DNA of 64,000 nt. It comes from Salpingoeca rosetta. Taxonomy: Eukaryota; Protista; Choanoflagellata. The notes under the pieces were generated by a model. The model worked only from the letters and a program-made list of their open reading frames with translations. It was not told the DNA's origin and ran no database searches. This document shows positions 7,727 through 58,539 of this stretch, one piece after another. Numbering within the stretch: the stretch's first letter is position 1; every line of letters begins with the position of its first letter. Position numbers and translations under genes: made by a program. The stretch lies in the NCBI GenBank assembly GCA_033442325.1, contig JAWQFM010000001.1, positions 1,389,535 through 1,453,534 on the forward strand, given 5' to 3'.

Positions 7727-8191
7727 TACAAATATTTTTTTTGTGGTGTGTGATTCTCACACTCTCTCTCCCTCTGCGTGTGTGTGTGGCGCTCTCTCGG
7801 CGAGGAATATCTCCAATGGCCTCTTTTTCTGGTTGCGTCTCTGTTCACCTCAGGGGCTGCATAACCCCACACAAGGGGCAATGAGTACATACACACGCAC
7901 ACTCCTGCACATATAAATAATACAGACGCACACTCCCCACACTGCCCCCGGGGGGGGGGGGGAACGCAAAATCGCCCATCACCGCCCCCTCCCCATTTCC
8001 TAACTTCTTAGCGTGCTCCAAGACAAAAATTAAACGAATGACAACTTGTCTGCGACCTTTCTATTCTGTGGTTTAGTTTAGANNNNNNNNNNNNNNNNNN
8101 NNNNNNNNNNNNNNNNNNNNNNNNNNNNNNNNNNNNNNNNNNNNNNNNNNNNNNNNNNNNNNNNNNNNNNNNNNNNNNNNNNACCACGTGT

Positions 8192-45528: not shown

Positions 45529-47186
45529 ATGTCGGGGCAACAGCGAGGAGGCAGGCTTCAGGAGGAGCTGGCTGCATTTCGAGCACGGTGGCTCAGCGAG
45601 CTGACACTGCCGTCTTCCCTCACACAGCAGCAGACACAAGGAGAACAAGGACCACAACAACAACAACAGCAACAACCAGGAGTGGCAAACGATGCAGCCG
45701 CATCCTTACCCAGCACCAGCAGCAGGACCACAACAACAGCCACCAGACACAGCGATGATGCGTCTGGTGACGCTCACCCCTTACTGCAGACAATCAGCAT
45801 CTGGGCTGGGGAGGACACCACAGCTCCCCACCAGGCGTCACACAGGCGGTTTGGCATTGAGGATGAATCTGGGCGGCACACACACGCACAGCCACAAGAA
45901 CCGGCACCCCTCCTGGTCATCCCGCTCAGGCCACAGCGGCGAGAAGCCGGCAAGAGCCACACCCGTGGCAGCGACGACAGCAGCGACGGGGATGACGATG
46001 ACGCCCTGTTTGATGCAGCGTTGGACGCTGCCCTCGCACGAAAGCGCCCCAAGACCTCAACCCCACAGCAAGCGGTACACGCAGCCGCGCAAACTGCAGC
46101 AGGACCAACAGCAGTAACAGCAGCAACAACAGCAACAACAGCAGTGGCAGGGAGAGCAACAGGCGCAACGTCGAAGCGAGCGGACATTTTTTCCAAGGCA
46201 TGGACCTCGCCCTTCGCAGCCGCACTCCGACAGCGTCGCAACGAAAAGCAAACATCAGGGCAACCCCACGGTCAGGCACAGCCAGAGAGGCACGTCGATG
46301 AGAAGCGCAAGTCGCACGAAGAAGCCACCACACCACCACACCACCCCCACGCCACCACCACCATCACCACCACCACGACGCCACATGGCACCACACCAAC
46401 CATAGACACGCCAACCCCACAACCACAACCACAACCACAGCTGCAGCAGCAGCAGCAGCTGCAGCAGCAGCAGCAGCAACAGCAAGTACAGCGTCGGCAG
46501 CAGGCACCACGTCCCCAGAACGAGTACGTGCGCATGCTCATCGATGACATCAACGAAGACATCACAGAGCCGCTCTTTGACGAGCTGTTGCCCCTGGAAG
46601 TGGCAGAGCTGGTGTTTCTCTATCTCGACCTGACCTCGCTTGGTCGGTGCGCCTGCGTCAGCCGAGCGTGGCGGGAGCTCGCCGACTCAAACCGCGTGTG
46701 GTATGCCTATGCGCGGAGGCACGGCATCACGGCCGCCCGCCTGTCTTCGCAGCGCGACTGGAAGGCGTTTGTGCGCCGCCGCATCTTGCAGGAGCGCGAG
46801 CAGCGCCGGCGGTGGATGGAGCTGCAGGCCGGGTTCATCTGCCTCAAGGACACGAGCACGTTCGACCAGGTCACGGCTGTGTCGTACACGTCGCGCGGGG
46901 TGGCTGTCGGATACCAGGACGGGCGGGTGCGTTTCTTTGCACGCGAGGATCTCATGCGTACGCGTATGGTCGACCCGTGTGCCCGCGCCAGCCGCATCAA
47001 CTGCATCGTGCACACAGAGGACATGATGTTGTGCGGAACACAATGCGGGAAGGTCGTTGGCTGGGACCACGGCTTTGGGCAGGTATTCTGCCTGCAGCAC
47101 CGAGATCCCATCAACCGCGTCACCGTCTGCCAGCACGCCTCCCACCCACGCGCGCTGGCGGCCTCCAACACCACACTCCTCGCGGC

Positions 47187-47227
<41 letters not shown>

Positions 47228-48384
47228 CAACAGCAACATCAACAGCAGCAGCAACAGCAACAGCAACAGCAGCACAAGCATTGCCAGCAGCAGTAGGAAG
47301 AGCAGCCACGGCAACAGGCGGTTGGAGACGTGGCCCAGTCCGTAACATGGTATCCCGCAACGCACGCCAGCCACAACCATTACAACAGCAGCAACACCAC
47401 CAGCAACAACAACTACAAGGCAGCAGCAGCAACACGGTTGGCAGTGGCCGTGATGAAGGCGGTCATGGATGGTGCTTCTCGCAAGCGAAGCGTGAGTTTG
47501 ATGCGAAGATCACACACGTTGACGAACTGAGCGCTGGCACCGACATCGCTGCCGTCATGACGACCGCCACACTCGACATCATCAACACGGAGCGCATGAG
47601 TCTCGTGCACAGCATCCACGCCGCACCCCCGCCGGGTGTCACGGGGGCAAAGTGCACATCACTGCACTGCTCTGGTGCGCACCTTGGGTATCTCACGTCG
47701 GACCACGGCATGTGGACGGCGCGGCTGGTGGATGTCTCCTCTGGCGGCATCGTGTGCACGTACACCGATTTCAGACACGCGCACAGATCCCTGCAGCTTG
47801 TGTCTGCTGCAACCAACAGCACGGCCACGGCCACCACCACACCGGTCTCGCCGGCACTTGAGCTGGCGCTTGCGGGGACGGCTGGCGTGAAGTTCTACGA
47901 CGTGCGCGCCGAGAATGTGTCGCAACACATCCGCACGCCCTCCTACCTGTGTCGCGATGTGCGTGTTGACGACTGGCGCGTGGTTGTGTCTGGGCGGTTC
48001 ACGGGCCCAACGGGGCGCCAGCCGCCGTTCAGCATTGCACTGTACGATCGGCGAATGGGGAAGCAGCTCTGGTTCGTGCGTCAGCGCGTGCCTGTGCGCT
48101 TTCTTGAGATGGATAAGGACACGATTGTGTTTGGTTCCAACCGGCACGTGGATCCGTGTGCCTCCAGTGCGCCATCCTTCATCCCGCACCGCCCGCGCCG
48201 ACCGCTGCTGCGCGACCTGGATTCCATGTCCTGTCTAAACGTGCTTGATTTTGCGGCGCCGCTGTCCTCTCTCACAGATGAGGAGTGTCCGTTCAGCAGC
48301 AAGTACGAGGACATTCACGGCTACAGCTTCAACATTGCCCTCGAAACTCCATTCGACGACGTCGAGCCATACAGACTGGGCTGA
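45529..48384 (+). CDS. F-box/WD40 protein, FBXW8-like, intronless, 951 aa
   Basis: F-box LPLEVAELVFLYLDLTSLGRCACVSRAWRELADSNRVW. FBXW8-like blocks: LAAFRARWLSEL, LIDDINE..PLFD, VRVDDWRVVVSG, YDRRMGKQLW and FNIALETPFDDV. Confidence 0.85.
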
Positions 48385-48873: not shown

Positions 48874-49162
48874 CTACGATGTTGTCTCGTGGGACTGGTT
48901 GTGGTCTGCCACCTCGTCGTCCAGGGCGCTGTCGAGGGCAAGCCTGGCCAGGTACTCCTCCCGTTTCACAGCAAGCGTCACAGCTGCATGTGGCGGAGGG
49001 ATTGGGGGAGGGGGGGGGGGTGGGCAGGAGTCAAGCGATGGTGAGAGCAAGGCAGACGCAGGTGCACACGCAGACACAGACAGAGACAGACAAAGAGACA
49101 GACAGACAAAGAGACACAGACACAGGCACACACAGGCACACACAGACACGCACAGACACACA

Positions 49163-49201
<39 letters not shown>

Positions 49202-50263
49202 ACACACACACACACAGACCTTGAGGGACGTCGGGGATGAGCCACTGGAAGAGGAACTTGCAGAGGAAGACAATGTGCTCAAAGATGATGAGGAAGCCCA
49301 GGCGAGCAGCAATGACCTCGTAGTAGAACTGGCCGCGTGTGCCGTCTGCCTCGCGAAGACCAAAGTAGCTGCAGGTGGTCGTGGTGGCAGTCAAGCGCGA
49401 GTGAGCACGCGACAGCGCATCGAGACAAGTTCATGACGAACACACACAAGGGTTGCAAGAACAAGTACACACATACGCAAACGCAAATGCAAACGCAATC
49501 GCAGACACAATGCATGCGGACAGACTGATGCTCACAAAACAACAGCCAACAACAATCAACAACCAAGAACAGCCATCAGCAATGAACAACAATCAATCAA
49601 CGATTAACGACAGCAGAGCAAAGGCGCGGGAGGACGCACTGGCAGTTTGCAAAGTCTGGATCATCTGCGGGGTCGACGGGCGAGAGCGGATAGATGGCAT
49701 CAATGTACCCGTGCAGCCTGATTCGAGTTGGGGATGAAGGAAGGGCGGGAGACGGAGGGACACGAGAGGGGTGAAGAAGATGAGTGGCCAACGACAGTGT
49801 TCGTGGCAATAAATGGCAAGGGAGTACACACAGAAGCAAAGCGGAGTGTGTGCGGCTGGAACATCCGATCAGGAAAGGGAACACCCACACATTCATGTGC
49901 AAGCATGAGCGATGACACAACTGCATGAGATCTCTCACGTTCCGTCGTGTGCGTAGCGCCAGACTTCGCGGGGAATGAAGTTGCTGCTGAATGCAATGAC
50001 GAGGCCGTTGGTCAGCACGCTGAAGTAGCTGATGAACGTCATCACCTCGTCCCTGAACGCGAACAGCACAGTGACATCCGGGGAAAGGAGGGTTGCGTGC
50101 GTTGGTGTGGTGCGGGCCGTGGCGGTGTCGCATGCAGAGTGAGCGCGGAATCACAGACAATGCATTGAGACAAACACGAGCAAGTGCGGTCACAAAGTAA
50201 TGCAATAGTGAGGACGTACACAGACGTGTGAGTAGACACCCACACCCACACCCACACCCACAC

Positions 50264-50297
<34 letters not shown>

Positions 50298-51470
50298 AAG
50301 GACGTGAGGGCGAACCAGATGCCGATGTTGGCGGCGCGCTGGGCTGGCGGGCGACGGTAGACGGTGAGGAGCTTGTGCGCATCAATGCGAATCTCCAGGA
50401 TGTTGTTCAGCAGCGCAAAGAACGGCGCAAGGGAGAAGGCTGACACAAACAGGGACAGGAAGCCAAACTGGTTTGGGGGAGGGGCGCAAGGGGCAAGGGA
50501 CAGAATGGGAATATGGACAGAGGCGCAAGATTGCATTGGGAGCGCGGGCGTGAGTTTGGCTGAGGGGCATGGATGGAGCGAGGTACATCAACCTTGCAGA
50601 AAGCAGAACAGAAAGCACAGAAGCGTGATGTATAAAACCACATACACACACAGGCACACACAGGCAGACACACACACACACACACACACGCAGAGGTTCC
50701 ACAGAGCAACGTTTACCTGCAGGATCATCTCGAGGTACTCTGGGAACATGCCGTACTGGGGGAAGGGCGCCAGGTTGAGGTACTGTCATCACACGGAAGC
50801 ACATGGGCGAGCACAGGCGGGTTAGGTTTGCTATGGGTGGCGGCGAGATTGTACAAGCAACAACAACAACAACAACAACAACAACAACTTAAACAACAAC
50901 AACAACAACTTAAACAACAACAAAACAACTTAAACAACAACAACAACAACTTAAACAATGTCTCACCTCGTTTTCCCACGGGAGGAGGCGACGGGCCTTT
51001 TCCTTGAGCTCTTTCGGCGCCATGATGTTGCGCACTTTGCGCATGACAGCTGGCAGCAGCATCTGTGCAGCGCACACGCACACACAGGAATGGTTGAGCA
51101 GAATGTTGAGTGAGTGAGTGAGTGAGTGAGAGTGAGTTTGTGGGTGAATGTGATGCGTGTGCGCATACTCATGAGGATGAGAACACTGATGGCAGTGATA
51201 GTGTTGACACAGAGGAGCAGCAAGTCCAAACGAGGCGCACAGCGTGCAGTCCAGGAGTGAATCAGGCGCTGTTTCGTGCGCATGTGCGACGGAACGAACC
51301 TCGACGATGTTGTTGATGATTTGGCGACCGACCATGATGATAGCGAGCTGGATGGTCAGCTCAAGCATGCATCCATACGGCGGGCTGAATGCGCCACACA
51401 CATGCATGGGAGACGACAAAGCAATGAGACAGCATGCAGCGTAAGGCCCCCAAGGGTACCAAGCTCCATG

Positions 51471-51534
<64 letters not shown>

Positions 51535-54500
51535 AACGCACCATTCGTCCTGTCTGTAGCCGAGGAGCTTGGTGTAGGCGCCTGGGCGGCCAACAAACTT
51601 GCCCTTGAAGAAGGCAATGTAGAAGATGGAGGCAAACGAGTTGACAAAGGAGAAGAGGAAGATCTTGGACGTCAGCGACCCTTCGTACTCAGACTCCTTC
51701 TGGTGGTTCTCCCAGTCGGTGAGGGTGACTGCAAGGCGGCCGTACACCTGGTTCATCAGCACAATGCCCGCCAAGTTGATCACACCAGCCGTCACAGCCG
51801 TGATTGTCGACGCTGAAGGCATGGACAACAAGAAACAACAGTGCCACAGTGTGTGAGATGGCGGCGGGAAACAATGTTGCCGAACAACTCATGCAGTGAT
51901 GAACACAAATGCAGACAGACACACACACACACACACAAACACACACAAACAAACAGAGACAAAGGCATAGGCACACACGCACGGGCAGGCACAGACGGAC
52001 AAAAACGGCGGACCTTGGGAGCCGTCGAGCTGAGCGGCGAGGGCGGCGCGGACGGCGATGCGGTAGACAATAACGGAGAACACAATGATGATGACGACTG
52101 CAAGCATCACAACCATGGTGGCAAAGCTGCCAACTTGCTTGACGGAGCGTTTGTAGCCTGGATAGTACTTCTCCTCCTTGCCCGTGACGGGATTCTTGCG
52201 CTTTGTTGTACCGCGGAACTGGGGCCGGTCACGCTCCTCCTCGGCAAAGTCGAGCACATCCCAGTCATAGCCGAGCTGCAATCGCGCGAATGACCGTGTG
52301 TGTGTGTGTGTGTGTGTGTGATTCATGTGTGTGTGCGCGTGTGATTCGTGCAGGTGCAGCACACTGTGTGTGTGTATGTGTACGACAAATGACTCCCGAG
52401 GGCAAGTCTGGCGCACCTCAGCGTTGCGGCGCTTCCAGAAGTCAATGAAGATGGACGCCCACACGGACATGAAGAACGCAAACGCAATTGTCGCCTCGTT
52501 GTCAAACCAGTATGACGCCTGCAACGACAGACGCATCAGGAGAAAAACACGTGCAGCAGTGTGCACATGGTGGTGAGTCATGACCCACAATGGCTCCCAG
52601 CGCACGGTGCAACTAATACATTCAAGCGAACGTCTCAAGACACCGCCCAACACGCGGTGATGCAACGTAAGGCCCACCCCACTTCTGCTTCCATGCTCGC
52701 TCACGCCACAATGAAATATCAACGATAACCGACCTGGTACATGTTGCACGCCTCGGTCAGGTTCCACCGCTCACAGCCCTCGTTGCACAGCGGGCACATC
52801 GTGAAGTTCGACTCGCACACATCAATTGCATCCTGTGCACGGCGGGTTGGGCGCCCAGAGGGAAGGACAGCGGGAGCAGCGGAGGTGGCGTGAGCGAGGG
52901 AGGCATGAATGTTGACACGGGACGCAGGTCAAATCCTCAAACCCCCACGCGCACGAGATGCAGACATGTACACCACAGCTTGGAACACACACACACACAC
53001 ACACACACTCTCTCAACCCGACCCAACACAAGGCAACCCAACATGGGTATTAGGGGACGTACGCGTTGCTGGCGATAGTTTGCAAGACCGTTGATGAAGA
53101 CGATGAAACCAAGGATACCGGGAACAAGGAGCGCATACGTGTAGAAGCCGAGCCAGGCAAAGTAGAGGCCTGAACACACGCACACACGTGCATGGGAGGC
53201 GTTGAAGGGCCATGAGTAACCGGGGATTCGCAGTTGACAACGACACACATCATAACTGTGACAACATATGTACACATACAATGTCCTGGTCCTGAACAGA
53301 GAGCATGGTGAGCAGCAGCAGCAGCGACGTACCAATCTTGACGCCAAAGTACTTTCTGATGAGGTCGTAGGGCTGGAAGATGAAGCAGAGCTTGAGCTGG
53401 CCCCACACCTCGTACAGCGTCTTGCGGTCGTTCACCTCGCGACCTGAGGCGAACACGTGTCACCATGGCGGGGCCAGCAAGCAAATCGGGTGAGGGGCAA
53501 TGCGAAAGGCGCCGGGATTCGTGCATACAAAGGTGCCGCGAACACACGCACACGACGCGTACCGGCTCACGGGTAACCACAGACAAACACCGACAAGCAC
53601 AAACAAATGTACTCATATGCACAGACACACACGCACGCAGAAAGACAGACACACACACACACATTTCCCCGCGCACACACACATAAATGCATGGACACAT
53701 GTGTGGCTTCAAGGCAGGAGCAGCCCACCCTTGTCGTATGGGTCCGGGTCATCGGGGTCGATCTTGTGCGGGCCGTCGTGGAGGGGAAAAGCAGCGGCGA
53801 AGGTGCCGTTGGTGAGCAGCTTCTTGATGCCAACCTGCGAGTCCTTGGCCCCGTACGGCACACGCGTCAGCTTCTCCCACACAAGCGAAGAGCGCTCGCC
53901 TTTGCAGTGTGTGACGCCGTGCAGATTTGAGTGGATGATGATGGTGTGGGTGTGGTACAGGGTGCGTGCGTGCGTGCGTGCGTGCGTGTGTGTGCGTGTG
54001 TGTAGGTGTGTGTAGGTGTGTGTAGGTGCGTGTGTGTGAGTGGGTGAGAGGAAAGATGCAAGTGCATGTGGGAAGTGAGGATGCAAAGGCACACGTGTGC
54101 AAGAGAGGGAGGCTGGGTGGGCGACTCACCGCTGGTGAAGAACTTGTCTTCGTCTTCGATGTTCTCAAATTGATCGCGGATGCACATGCGAAAGTCTGCA
54201 CTGAACGAGTCCGGCTCCTCCTCCACATCCGGCTGCAGGCGCCTGCTCGCCACGAACACGCACACACACACACACACACACACGTACAGGACAACATAGG
54301 CCAATAAGTAAGGCGGGCGCACAGATGTTTGTGTTTGCGGATGAAGTTAGCAGAGGTCTGTATGCGCGCGCGCGTGTGAGAGAGAGAGGGTGTGTGTCGC
54401 TTTGTATGATACGCACGTGAGGTACTGGGCCGGGCTGAGGGAAAGGAAGAGGCGGTCAGCAAACGACTTCTGCACCAGCAGCTCTTGCAGGTGCGACGAC

Positions 54501-55010
54501 GCCTACACCCGCACACGCACGCAGGCACATGACACGCGTGAGGGACACGATTGAGCATTTGGCAAGGGCAGTGCTGGCTGCAGCAGTTCCACACACAGGA
54601 GCAGACAGCCACACACAGGTACACGCAGACACAGACACACAAGGGCAATGCTAACAGCAGAAGGCGAGCACTGGCATGTGGTGCGGCGCGCAATTCACCT
54701 CAGGCTTAAGGGTCTTCTTGATCTTCGACTTCTCAGCCTCCTGCAGGAGCAGCTCAAACGGCGCGTGGACCTGGCACCCAGGGGGGAGTGATGATGATGA
54801 TGATGATGGTGGTGATGGCGGTGGTGGTGTTGTGATGAGGTGATAGAGGGTGGGGCGCACAGGAAACAAGACACAGTAGACATAACAGGACACAGAGGCA
54901 CGTAACCACCGGCAGCAGCTTTGATTTGATGCACACCTTGATGAAGAGGAGTTCGCCGTCAGGAGAGCACTCCGTCTCCAGCTCAAACCCTATAATTGTT
55001 GTCGTTGTCG

Positions 55011-55062
<52 letters not shown>

Positions 55063-55225
55063 CAGTTTTGCATGTTCACAACATCGCGCATCAAAACCAC
55101 TTCCGCCACTAACGCCGTACCGTCCCGCCACCACAGCATGCAGGGTGCGCACCGAGGTCGCGAAGGCTCTGCAGGAAGATGCCGCGCTTGCGAACTTGCT
55201 TCACCTCAGACGGATCGTCAGAGGT
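48874..55225 (-). CDS. Anoctamin/TMEM16 Ca2+-activated channel or scramblase, multi-exon; no clear start exon of its own
   Basis: [150 protein letters not shown]. Confidence 0.95.
50858..50958. repeat. (CAA)n repeat interrupted by CTTAAA (anoctamin intron)
   Basis: Same motif as 34944-35060. Confidence 0.9.
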
Positions 55226-55237
55226 CTGGCAACCAGC

Positions 55238-55282
<45 letters not shown>

Positions 55283-55341
55283 ACGTGAATATGGACATAC
55301 ATGATTCACAAGATATGACACACACACACACACACACACAC

Positions 55342-56018
55342 CTTAGAGAGCATGTTGAGCAGCTGGTCCCCGCGTCGCTTGACACCGCCCCGACACGCCC
55401 GAAACGCCTTGCGAATGTCGAGCCACTGATGCCTGCAGGCAACCAAGGGATGCATGGGCATGCGTTGTGTGTGCGTGCGTTTTGTGCAATGTGCGCATAT
55501 GCGTGCATATGCAGCGTGAAGAAAGTGCGTTGAGCGTTGGCAAGTCAGCAAAGGACTGTAGCTTCTCTTCCGTCGCTCGTCAGCCGTATGCGCACGTGCA
55601 AGCCACCACCAATTCTCTCCAACCACTCATCTGTGGGTGTGTTGGCCCTTACATGAGTGCTGGCGCAGGTACACTGCTGGCACGGCACTGCCACTGGAAG
55701 AAGTTGCGAAAGTCCCACGGGCTAACAAGAGTATTACGTGAGGGGTGTGGTTGGTCGTGTGTGGTTGGTCGTGTGTGGTTGGTCGTGTGTGGGTGTGAGA
55801 AGGAGAGCAAACTGGACAGGAGGGAGGAGGATGGAAGCGAGAGTCGGCGTGAGCATGAGAACAGCGGTGGATGCGAGGGATACAAGGAAGGTGGTGCCGT
55901 GAGAAGAAAACGACGAACACAGACATGTGAGGGAGAGCATTCATTACCCGTCAGATGCAAGTAGCAGCTTGTGGCCAGCGTCATGCGATCTGAATGAACA
56001 CAAGTGAATGGTGCGATG

Positions 56019-56076
<58 letters not shown>

Positions 56077-56214
56077 CATGCATGTGGGTCAATTGACGGT
56101 GGCAGGGCAAAGCGCAATCAATACAAGGTGCAACACAACACACTTCATTCGAAACCACCCACGCAACAGGGTGCATCCACAGGTCATACCCACTCACTCT
56201 CCATGCATCATCAG

Positions 56215-56290
<76 letters not shown>

Positions 56291-57629
56291 GTCACTGTGT
56301 ACACGTGCGGACCTGTACTTGTCGAGGATGGCCATGACCTGATCCAGGACATGTGGGAACTCGGCTGCGCTGTCAACGCTCTCCTGCCGTACACATCGCA
56401 GGTGTAGGTGGTATTCATGCGAGGGTTGTTTGAAAAGAGGACGCACACGTACATGCGTCTACGAACGTATGGGTGTGGGTGTGCCTGATGATGTGGCACC
56501 TTGTGTGCGTCGCGAACTGAAGCACACAAACACAGACACAGACGCAGACACACGCAGACACACACTGGCAGCCAGACAGACAGAACACACACATATATAC
56601 ACGCACACGCGTATGCGCAGGTGCACGTTAATACCTGCTTGATGCCAGTGAGTTGTGTGCAAAAGGGAGAGAGTATCGGGTTGAACACGGGACGGCAGTA
56701 GAACTGCTGCTTCTCAACCTGAGTGTGTGTGTATGTGTGTGTGTGTGTGTGGTCCATTCCAATGTCAGATGTCTTGAGGCAATGTGCTCACCACCGCAAC
56801 GTGAACGCAACGTGAACGCACGACACCACCTATCACGCGTCATCGCAAGCGTGAAACAAGTGCACGGCCAGTTCCCACGCGCACAGAACTGTACTCACAA
56901 TCTCTTTCCGGTGAACATCAATGATGACGAGGGGAAACTCGATAATCTCATGTGGGAAGTTGGCATCGTCCTCTTCACAGGTTGCCTCAAAGTCCACAAC
57001 GCAGATGAAGGTCGCGTCCTTGCCATGCTTCTTGGATAATCTGCACGTGCACCACAGCGACATTGTGCAGGTGATAGGCGAGGGCTGGAGCAACAGCAAA
57101 CACCACATCGCACCGCCTGCCACAAGCTTATTCCATTCCCCACACCCTGCGCCACCATCTCTTATTACCTGCTGCTGTCTTGGACTTGTTGTGGCTGTGG
57201 TTTCGTGATGCGTTTGTTGACGGCTTGCTTGAGGCGATCTCGCAAGGCCTTGGCTGATCCCTTTCGCTCCACCTTTAGCTCAGCTGCAGCATTCACCAGC
57301 TGTCCGTGGTTCATCTGATTGATCAGGCGTCTTGCGCTCCGCACAACACCACCACTCTGGCCGCCATTGCCGCTTCTGCCTTTGCTTCCGCTTCCGCTGC
57401 TGCTGCTGCTGGGGTTGTTGGCGTTCTTTCCTGCCGTCGCAGGCTTCTTCTTCACTGTGACCAGCTCCACCAGCTCGCTCACCACTCCTTTCTTCTTCTT
57501 CTTCCTCGTTTTCTTGTTCAACTGTGTCTTCTTTCCCGTCGCCCCTCTCTTCTCTTTCTCCTCATGACATGCCTCCTCTTCCTGCTGCTCGTGCTTCTCC
57601 TCCACCTGCTCTCCTCCAGCAGGGTGCAT
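55342..57629 (-). CDS. ERI1: ERI1-like 3'-5' exoribonuclease (SAP + DEDDh); ExoIII-motif exon not found
   Basis: SAP-like INQMNHGQL..AAAELKVERKGSAKALRDRLK; ExoI ICVVDFEATC..HEIIEFP; YCRPVFNPILSPFCTQLTGIKQESVDSA..FP.VL; ExoII ASDGPWDF; QWLDIRKAF; the sequence ends LLNMLSK at a splice donor. Start is ATG 57629 or 57647. Confidence 0.88.
56206..56289. repeat. (CAT)n microsatellite in an ERI1 intron
   Basis: Visible directly. Confidence 0.95.
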
Positions 57630-57810
57630 CACGGAGGCAGTGTGCATTGTCACAAAGCTGGCTGGAAAGAAGACCACAACAGCACAAAATAACCGCGCCG
57701 TTAACATCGCTGTTGGTTCTCGGCGCTGTTGGTGGTGCCTGCTTGCCTCCTTCCAGCTCTCCTCGCTTGACTTGCTTGCGTTTACTGGCGTGTTAACACC
57801 AAGGGGCACC

Positions 57811-58539
57811 ATGGGTGTGCCGGCGCGGCTGGTGTGGGGTGACGTCCACTTCCACGGGCTTGTGCTTCATGCTGGTGCAGCCGACGCGCCACAAGCCTCT
57901 GCGGCGCCCACGCCAACGACCAGAGCCAGTGAACGTGGTTCTGCGTCGCGACATGGTGAGGTGGTGGCGCCCTCCAAGTCACAGGCGGTGGCTTTGCCGT
58001 CTTCCAGGGACCCGCCACCTTCCCGGTGCTCAGCATCCGTCCTCTCATCGTCACTGGCAGCATCGACAGCAACAGCTGCGCCTGCGTCGCAGCTTGGCTC
58101 GTTTGCTCCAAAGCTGTCACGGATGCCTTCGGTGACACGATTGCGACGCACGCGCGATCCGCTCTTGGGGCTCACCCGGGCCTCGTTCATCTGTGAAGGC
58201 ATCATCACGCTTCACAGGTGGCAGCTTTCCTCCGTCGGCGCTCACTCGGGCACGATCACCGTTCCAGGCCCACAAACAACGGAGCGTCACAGTATCGCCA
58301 TGTCCACATCTTCTTCGGGCGGCACTCACGTCGAATCAGGCGCAAGCGAGCTTCCGCCAGAAGCGCCACCAGAGACGCAAGCGCTCATGCAATGGCTTGC
58401 CCAGTCTAGGTTTGTCCATGTGTGTTTTGTGTGTGTGCGTGTGCAAAGTGTGTGCTGTGTGTGTGTTGTGTGCTGTGTGTGTGTGTGAGTGTGTGTGTGA
58501 GTGTGTGTGTGAGTGTGTATGTGCGAAGTGTGTGTGTGC

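Follow-up and report, generated by a model that had tools for sequence, protein, structure and literature searches.

Within a 64,000-nucleotide stretch of the genome of the choanoflagellate Salpingoeca rosetta (assembly GCA_033442325.1, contig JAWQFM010000001.1, positions 1,389,535 to 1,453,534; the whole stretch is referred to as the window), an ERI1 exoribonuclease gene appears to run in frame into a TMEM16/anoctamin gene. Both genes lie on the minus strand, and all gene coordinates given here are window positions. The ERI1 gene is without its 3′ end, the anoctamin gene is without an ordinary 5′ end, and 116 nucleotides (nt), largely GT repeat, separate the two. With moderate confidence we regard the fusion as an artefact, in which two ordinary genes have been joined because DNA is missing from the assembly at the GT-repeat junction.

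Seven exons, E1 to E7, make up the ERI1 part. The closest ERI1 is that of Barroeca monosierra, a protein of 347 residues, and the identity to it, exon by exon, is 48–69% in the nuclease core and 34% over a SAP-like stretch. E1 (57629–57169), defined from its open reading frame (ORF) and by tblastn, begins with the ATG at 57629, is rich in lysine and serine and carries a SAP-like helix-hairpin; it aligns with the SAP-like stretch of the B. monosierra protein, residues 66–106, with E = 0.021 and without a Pfam SAP match. E2 (57040–56899), 69% identical to residues 121–168, contains the ExoI motif D-x-E within VVDFEATCEE, which aligns with the motif in five orthologues and gives a weak match to RNase_T at profile positions 2–31. 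E3 (56718–56635) is 68% identical to residues 165–192 and E4 (56383–56313) matches residues ~193–217. E5 (55989–55948), which was read from the sequence, ends with LLLASDG and, like E3 and E4, has GT-AG splice sites. E6 (55721–55653), 61% identical to residues 231–253, supplies PWDFRNFF with the ExoII aspartate, such that ASDG and PWDF on either side of the E5/E6 boundary align with the SDGPWDF of the orthologues. We take this aspartate to be equivalent to D234 of human ERI1, in S-W-D. E7 (55432–55342), 61% identical to residues 255–282, ends with GDQLLNMLSK at a codon boundary; no ERI1 coding sequence was found beyond it in the assembly. E7 abuts a (GT)12 repeat, the next bases being GTGTGT, and if it were not spliced the frame would continue for 11 codons into the repeat before the stop codon TGA at 55308–55306. 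Three intron positions, including one at E6, are common to the ERI1 genes of S. rosetta and M. brevicollis.

Further in-frame ATG codons are found at 57647 and farther upstream of the ERI1 start. The farthest upstream, at 57812, overlaps the start of an annotated gene of 1020 residues on the plus strand, and its use is unlikely. The ATG of that gene, at 57811, and the start codon of ERI1 on the opposite strand are ~180 nt apart, and a short bidirectional promoter is therefore probably common to both genes.

The order of these elements, with a SAP-like stretch followed by a nuclease core containing the ExoI D-x-E and the ExoII D, is that of ERI1/3′hExo/THEX1, a DEDDh 3′-5′ exoribonuclease with an N-terminal SAP domain and a PF00929 nuclease domain. 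Unlike ERI1/3′hExo, the S. rosetta locus lacks, within the window, the last ~65 residues, the ExoIII motif and the stop codon. The H-x4-D (ExoIII) segment of ERI1 provides the catalytic His and the last Asp of DEDDh. In the B. monosierra protein both are held in the last 65 residues (FDLAFEGTPHSGLDDAYNAARV...), for which the window has no counterpart: in a permissive tblastn search the window aligned with residues 66–282 only, and neither this search nor a regular-expression search of the six frames of the window found an ExoIII motif of the H-x-G-x-x-D type. A first, sequence-only reading of this DNA had reported that there was no ERI1 stop exon and that the segment with the catalytic His and last Asp was absent, and both searches agree with it.

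The search was extended to the 55-Mb assembly, where the B. monosierra ERI1 query matched only this locus and found neither a second ERI1 nor the missing C-terminus. A degenerate pattern, H-[STCWR]-G-x-D-D, gave 98 matches in the whole assembly as against 68 in the control; none of the 38 that were inspected in context, comprising the 30 reported loci and the remaining ones with a hydrophobic fourth residue, was ERI1-like. The RNase_T profile detected only two unrelated exonucleases in the whole assembly, an oligoribonuclease-like ORF on C11 and another on C1, by a route that is insensitive, since the window's own short exons went undetected. A block of 380 base pairs (bp) lying 27 kb away (C1:1480491–1480870) was considered as a misplaced piece of the locus and was rejected, as it encodes no part of ERI1 or of an anoctamin. 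This block is in an intron of CASD1 between (TG)n tracts of ~180 and 90 bp, has a GC content of 47% and is random-looking with no coding signal. Its match to the C-terminal helix of ERI1 is weak (7/17, E = 0.32), and the GC content at third codon positions, counted by hand, is about half, as against about two-thirds in ERI1 exon 2.

The anoctamin part consists of nineteen exons, A1 to A19, running to the stop at 48874. A1 (55225–55153) opens in phase 0, encodes helix 1 of the N-terminal domain and ends with the first base of a Gly codon. A2 (54989–54937) continues with GFELE and A3 (54770–54699) has a weak match to Anoct_dimer at profile positions 61–84, both having GT-AG splice sites. Together these three exons encode the helix-1 and strand-2 part of the TMEM16 N-terminal domain. 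The rest of this domain and the ten-helix membrane domain are encoded by A4–A19 (54232–48874, with the stop codon TAG at 48876–48874), over the coordinates of which PF04547 (Anoctamin) is matched with E = 2.9e-44 and PF16178 (Anoct_dimer) with E = 9.7e-10. The membrane domain is complete, with the exon-wise matches to PF04547 spanning profile positions 10–452, and Anoct_dimer positions 144–196 are matched by A5. While A1 alone has no Pfam match, the spacing of its motif, R-R-x2-F/Y-x3-L-x3-G-hydrophobic-E-L-E, is that of an exon of the S. rosetta paralogue on C22, which covers Anoct_dimer positions 22–84.

Like other members of the TMEM16/anoctamin family (PF04547 with PF16178), the S. rosetta gene thus has the whole membrane domain and the greater part of the cytosolic N-terminal domain. 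It differs from them in its start: no ordinary start codon or start exon was found for it, and the Anoct_dimer positions before ~15, which form strand 1, have no counterpart unless they are supplied by a candidate micro-exon of six codons, MYVHIH, in the junction. In the C22 paralogue strand 1 has the sequence VDFVLVY and is encoded on a separate upstream exon that is followed by a GT-repeat intron. A profile search of the assembly gave four TMEM16 loci in the S. rosetta genome. Four S. rosetta TMEM16 genes are also given in the accessible part of a preprint on the family (bioRxiv 10.1101/2022.04.22.489151), and that part of the text makes no mention of a nuclease domain on any of them.

An anoctamin ~80% identical to the S. 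rosetta gene is present in an uncultured marine relative from Tara Oceans (scaffold ENA ERZ28653893, 1–3948). This gene has few introns and its equivalent of A4–A9 is a single exon, which implies heavy intron gain or loss between close relatives. The contigs of this relative, which were found with a 293-residue open frame from the window, all begin at a microsatellite just before A4. An exon-by-exon MAFFT alignment to a long metagenomic anoctamin ORF was shredded and was abandoned. The 293-codon frame is made up of A9, A10 and the intron between them (anoctamin intron 16, 52276–52416); this intron, of 141 nt, is in frame and stop-free, so that its retention would add 47 residues and leave the protein frame unbroken.

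The two genes meet at 55341–55226, the 116 nt between the end of E7 at 55342 and the start of A1 at 55225. These consist of (GT)12 at 55341–55318, a unique island of 38 nt at 55317–55280, (GT)19 at 55279–55242 and an acceptor region of 16 nt, with no run of N among them. The AG of the acceptor, at 55227–55226, is normal-looking (GGTTGCCAG) and opens A1 in phase 0. The tracing of the exons agrees with the sequence-only reading in placing the LLNMLSK end of ERI1 at a phase-0 donor at 55342, and the coordinates and open frame agree with it in placing an acceptor 116 nt on, followed by a phase-0 anoctamin exon at 55225. The two repeat tracts that it described are also there, though as (GT)n on the coding strand, (CA)n being the plus-strand reading. 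Every intron of the locus is GT-AG and, in a local count on the spliced coding sequence, there is no stop in the 746 codons from an ATG at 57108 through A14.

Among the 25 introns across both genes, which range from 116 to 466 nt with a median of ~220, the junction is both the shortest and the richest in repeats, GT repeat making up 62 of the 116 nt (53%). GT repeats occur in 11 of the 25. The GT at the junction donor carries little information, as it is simply the first GT of (GT)12. The coding homology of ERI1 reaches the first base of this repeat, and in M. brevicollis the exon goes on for six more codons (to MLQAVGLTFE), so the apparent donor of E7 may be repeat only. The junction may be a true intron, or it may be two half-introns that came together when the DNA between them was lost; its make-up fits the second of these, with the loss between GT tracts. 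A loss by the assembler and a loss by the organism are not separable from the sequence alone.

The fused gene is already in the public record. GCA_000188695.1 (GL832955.1) annotates a single gene over window 48874–57108, with a product of 978 residues that matches RNase_T, Anoct_dimer and Anoctamin, and the fusion is therefore not new: the open frame that led the sequence-only reading to propose a chimera stands, but not the suggestion that such an architecture was previously unknown. The annotated coding sequence starts at the ATG at 57108, inside intron 1 of the present model, and omits the SAP-like E1. In this it is unlike a model guided by a full-length transcript. From the pipeline that was described (PMC4054682), a fused mRNA would be expected to align fully, so that PASA would have carried the ORF on to E1. 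A manual model from the same start gives 939–960 residues, or 946–954 with the preferred splice choices, and the annotated product thus differs from the preferred model by 24–32 residues at a place that was not located.

The origin of the sequence has a bearing on how much weight the junction can carry. Window 35529–58384 is identical to the 2013 record GL832955.1 over 22,856 bp, and the assembly to which the window belongs, of 68 sequences and 55.45 Mb, has the same contigs as that of 2013 in larger scaffolds. The 2013 S. rosetta draft was scaffolded with Hi-C, with no new sequence, by Schultz et al, 2023 (PMC10232365). We infer that the window's assembly is this rescaffold, in which case there is no new sequence at the junction. 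The newer assembly carries the 2013 sequence, leaving the junction without independent sequence support. The 2013 assembly was made from Sanger and 454 reads with Newbler and Arachne and captures ~96% of de novo transcripts (PMC4054682), so that some S. rosetta sequence is known to be missing from it. The window has a single run of N, 100 N denoting a gap of unknown size, at 8083–8182 and well away from the junction. A (GT)n tract of ~58 bp comes immediately after it, so GT microsatellites are evidently places where contigs of this assembly can end.

Comparison with other choanoflagellates, as had been proposed with the sequence-only reading, shows ERI1 as a free-standing protein in six other species, with the complete motif in five; the sequence from S. 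kvevrii ends early. The ERI1 proteins of B. monosierra, M. brevicollis, S. urceolata, S. helianthica and Stephanoeca diplocostata are of 292–424 residues and all have the ExoIII motif, which in the last four is within FEGRPHSGIDD. In M. brevicollis the neighbours of ERI1 are unrelated and there is no adjoining anoctamin. No ERI1 relative of more than 661 residues was present among the best 150 representatives, nor was there one of more than 672 residues or with PF04547 among the word-search matches listed. A word search of the protein collection for an S. rosetta ERI1-containing product of 191–607 residues found none, the length range of the ERI1 word search being one that excludes the annotated product of 978 residues. 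The latter protein is not a 50% representative, and a profile search that started from the window exons did not have it among the 120 best matches.

The reading that we favour is of two ordinary neighbouring genes on the same strand. One is for an ERI1/3′hExo-type DEDDh exoribonuclease and the other belongs to the four TMEM16/anoctamin genes of S. rosetta. The DNA that separates them would have dropped out of the 2013 Sanger/454 assembly at one or other (GT)n tract, taking with it the remainder of ERI1 intron 7, one or more terminal exons with H-x4-D and the stop codon, the 3′ untranslated region, the intergenic sequence and the promoter of the anoctamin. The first exon of the anoctamin may have been lost as well, unless the MYVHIH micro-exon is that exon; the anoctamin would then be complete and the breakpoint would be the first GT tract, beside E7. 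Two half-introns brought together in this way would mimic a phase-0 intron of 116 nt, and gene predictors would for that reason have bridged the two genes into the 978-residue fusion. The terminal part of ERI1 would thus be absent from the assembly rather than from the organism.

Missing DNA is suggested by the state of both genes. A conserved, single-copy ERI1 that is otherwise intact appears to be without its final catalytic segment only, and the anoctamin appears to begin in helix 1, with neither a start codon nor β-strand 1. The junction between them is the shortest and most GT-rich intron, and another GT tract abuts the N gap of the window. In addition, no relative examined has the fusion, the assembly is incomplete and the annotated model omits E1. 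The locus also resembles the chimeric models that arise from assembly gaps or from the merging of same-strand neighbours, in that the upstream gene has no 3′ end and the downstream gene no 5′ end, the genes are linked by a short, repeat-rich pseudo-intron and the model itself lacks part of its 5′ end. Unlike the usual models caused by gaps, there is no N gap at the S. rosetta junction, so any loss of sequence is silent in the assembly. The converse case is known from the same genome, where a gap split one septin gene into PTSG_04363 and PTSG_04364 and was corrected by polymerase chain reaction on cDNA (PMC4054682).

Several observations weigh against missing DNA. The sequence-only reading had put forward an assembly collapse between the repeat tracts, and while this fits a single-copy ERI1 that has no motif and a repeat-rich junction, the lack of an N gap counts against it. 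As assembled, the tracts are of 24 and 38 bp, which 454 and Sanger reads of 400–800 bp should span, and (TG)n tracts of ~180 bp have been assembled elsewhere in the same assembly. The 2013 assembly was manually curated, and transcript support was reported for 98% of its gene models (PMC4054682). The join is in frame, which has a 1-in-3 chance, and has a normal acceptor. Finally, the whole-genome exon search is insensitive to exons that are short, split or divergent.

A real fusion is the next to be considered and seems to us unlikely. In this case the DNA from ERI1 intron 7 to the first intron of the anoctamin would have been deleted from the genome, perhaps by recombination between GT tracts, to give a chimeric gene. 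Its product, driven by the ERI1 promoter, would combine the SAP-like module, a nuclease domain without the His/Asp motif and a TMEM16 channel or scramblase. The sequence as assembled agrees with this, with phase-0 splice sites, introns that are all GT-AG and a frame that is open over the join, as does the public single gene of 978 residues with its three domain matches, taken with the transcript support reported for nearly all models. The repeats are short enough for Sanger reads and there is no N gap. Loss of the 3′ end upstream and the 5′ end downstream is moreover the footprint that would be expected of fusion by deletion, and this, together with the compatible intron phases, is a likeness to 'Rosetta-stone' fusions formed by deletion between neighbouring genes. 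Such fusions, however, normally keep both domains whole. In the S. rosetta locus each partner is broken within a folded domain, and the only copy of ERI1 would lose its activity. S. rosetta would have no catalytically complete ERI1, a gene that animals and at least five other choanoflagellates retain. The three remaining catalytic residues and all of the splice sites are nevertheless intact, so that any loss must be recent. From what is known of the folds, a truncated DEDDh domain and a TMEM16 N-terminal domain without strand 1 would both be structurally doubtful. The architecture is found in no relative examined and its annotation is without E1. The chimeric protein is the option least supported biologically. 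That it is expressed, holding a SAP-like module and a dead ERI1 core at the cytosolic face of a Ca2+-activated TMEM16, with canonical ERI1 activity given up, seems slightly more doubtful again.

Less probable than either is that the assembly is right and that there is no fusion protein. The anoctamin would start at the candidate micro-exon (55302–55285; ATG TAT GTC CAT ATT CAC, encoding MYVHIH and followed by GTACGT), from a promoter in the 3′ region of ERI1, and ERI1 would be a decaying, C-terminally truncated gene. The micro-exon was first pointed out in the sequence-only reading; its sequence and the GTACGT are as described there, and there is some likeness to strand 1. MYVHIH followed by TSDD...KRGIFLQSL...GFELE resembles the strand-loop-helix with which TMEM16 proteins start, as in the VDFVLVY of the C22 paralogue, and the strand-1 exon of that paralogue likewise precedes a GT-repeat intron. 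The ATG, at 55302, has an A at −3, the GTACGT donor after the exon is in phase 0, and without splicing E7 runs into an in-frame stop. On the other hand, the likeness is that of a six-residue peptide, for which the Tara Oceans relative gives no orthologous N-terminus, its contigs starting before A4, and the intron to A1 would be of 59 nt, when even the shortest of the 25 introns here is twice as long. With only 15 nt between (GT)12 and the ATG, a polyadenylation site and a promoter would have nowhere to fit, and ERI1 is otherwise without signs of decay.

Reading through the donor of A1 (window 55109–55153) leads to a stop at 55111–55109, and the resulting peptide matches residues 306–318 of B. 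monosierra ERI1 (LIKLLEQGLHPAC) at 7 of 13 positions (E = 0.01 in pairwise BLASTP), its GAHPAC corresponding to the GLHPAC of the B. monosierra C-terminus. It is very improbable that A1 serves by alternative splicing or polyadenylation both as a degenerate ERI1 C-terminus and as the helix-1 exon of the anoctamin: although the match is in the correct order after the nuclease core and the product would be near the normal length of ERI1, the same match has E = 20 in a window-wide search, the catalytic His and ~10 residues would still be missing, there is no N-x-A-R helix signature after DD, the helix-1 motif of the anoctamin is a much closer fit for A1 and HPAC sits in an otherwise ordinary intron. 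The match is probably due to chance, favoured by the fact that the two segments are both amphipathic helices with a Gly at the end.

If the fusion is an artefact, the public S. rosetta catalogue, which is widely used in work on animal origins, holds a false RNase_T-anoctamin protein of 978 residues, has no proper ERI1 and has a truncated TMEM16. This may mislead surveys of domain architecture, orthology tables and counts of "choanoflagellate-specific fusions", and the Hi-C rescaffold inherits the error. A real fusion, on the other hand, would link an RNA-binding or dead-nuclease module to a lipid scramblase or channel, which would be unusual and specific to the lineage, and a conserved RNA-processing enzyme would have been lost in a model choanoflagellate.

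Beyond the end of the anoctamin, a single-exon gene of 951 residues on the plus strand (window 45529–48384) has long runs of Gln, Ala and Thr and no Pfam match on record, and GL832955.1 carries it annotated in this form. Two in-frame trinucleotide microsatellites are found within introns of the locus, (GAT)n of ~90 bp at window 56210–56300 in ERI1 intron 4 and (CAA)n of ~70 bp at window 54995–55065 in anoctamin intron 8.

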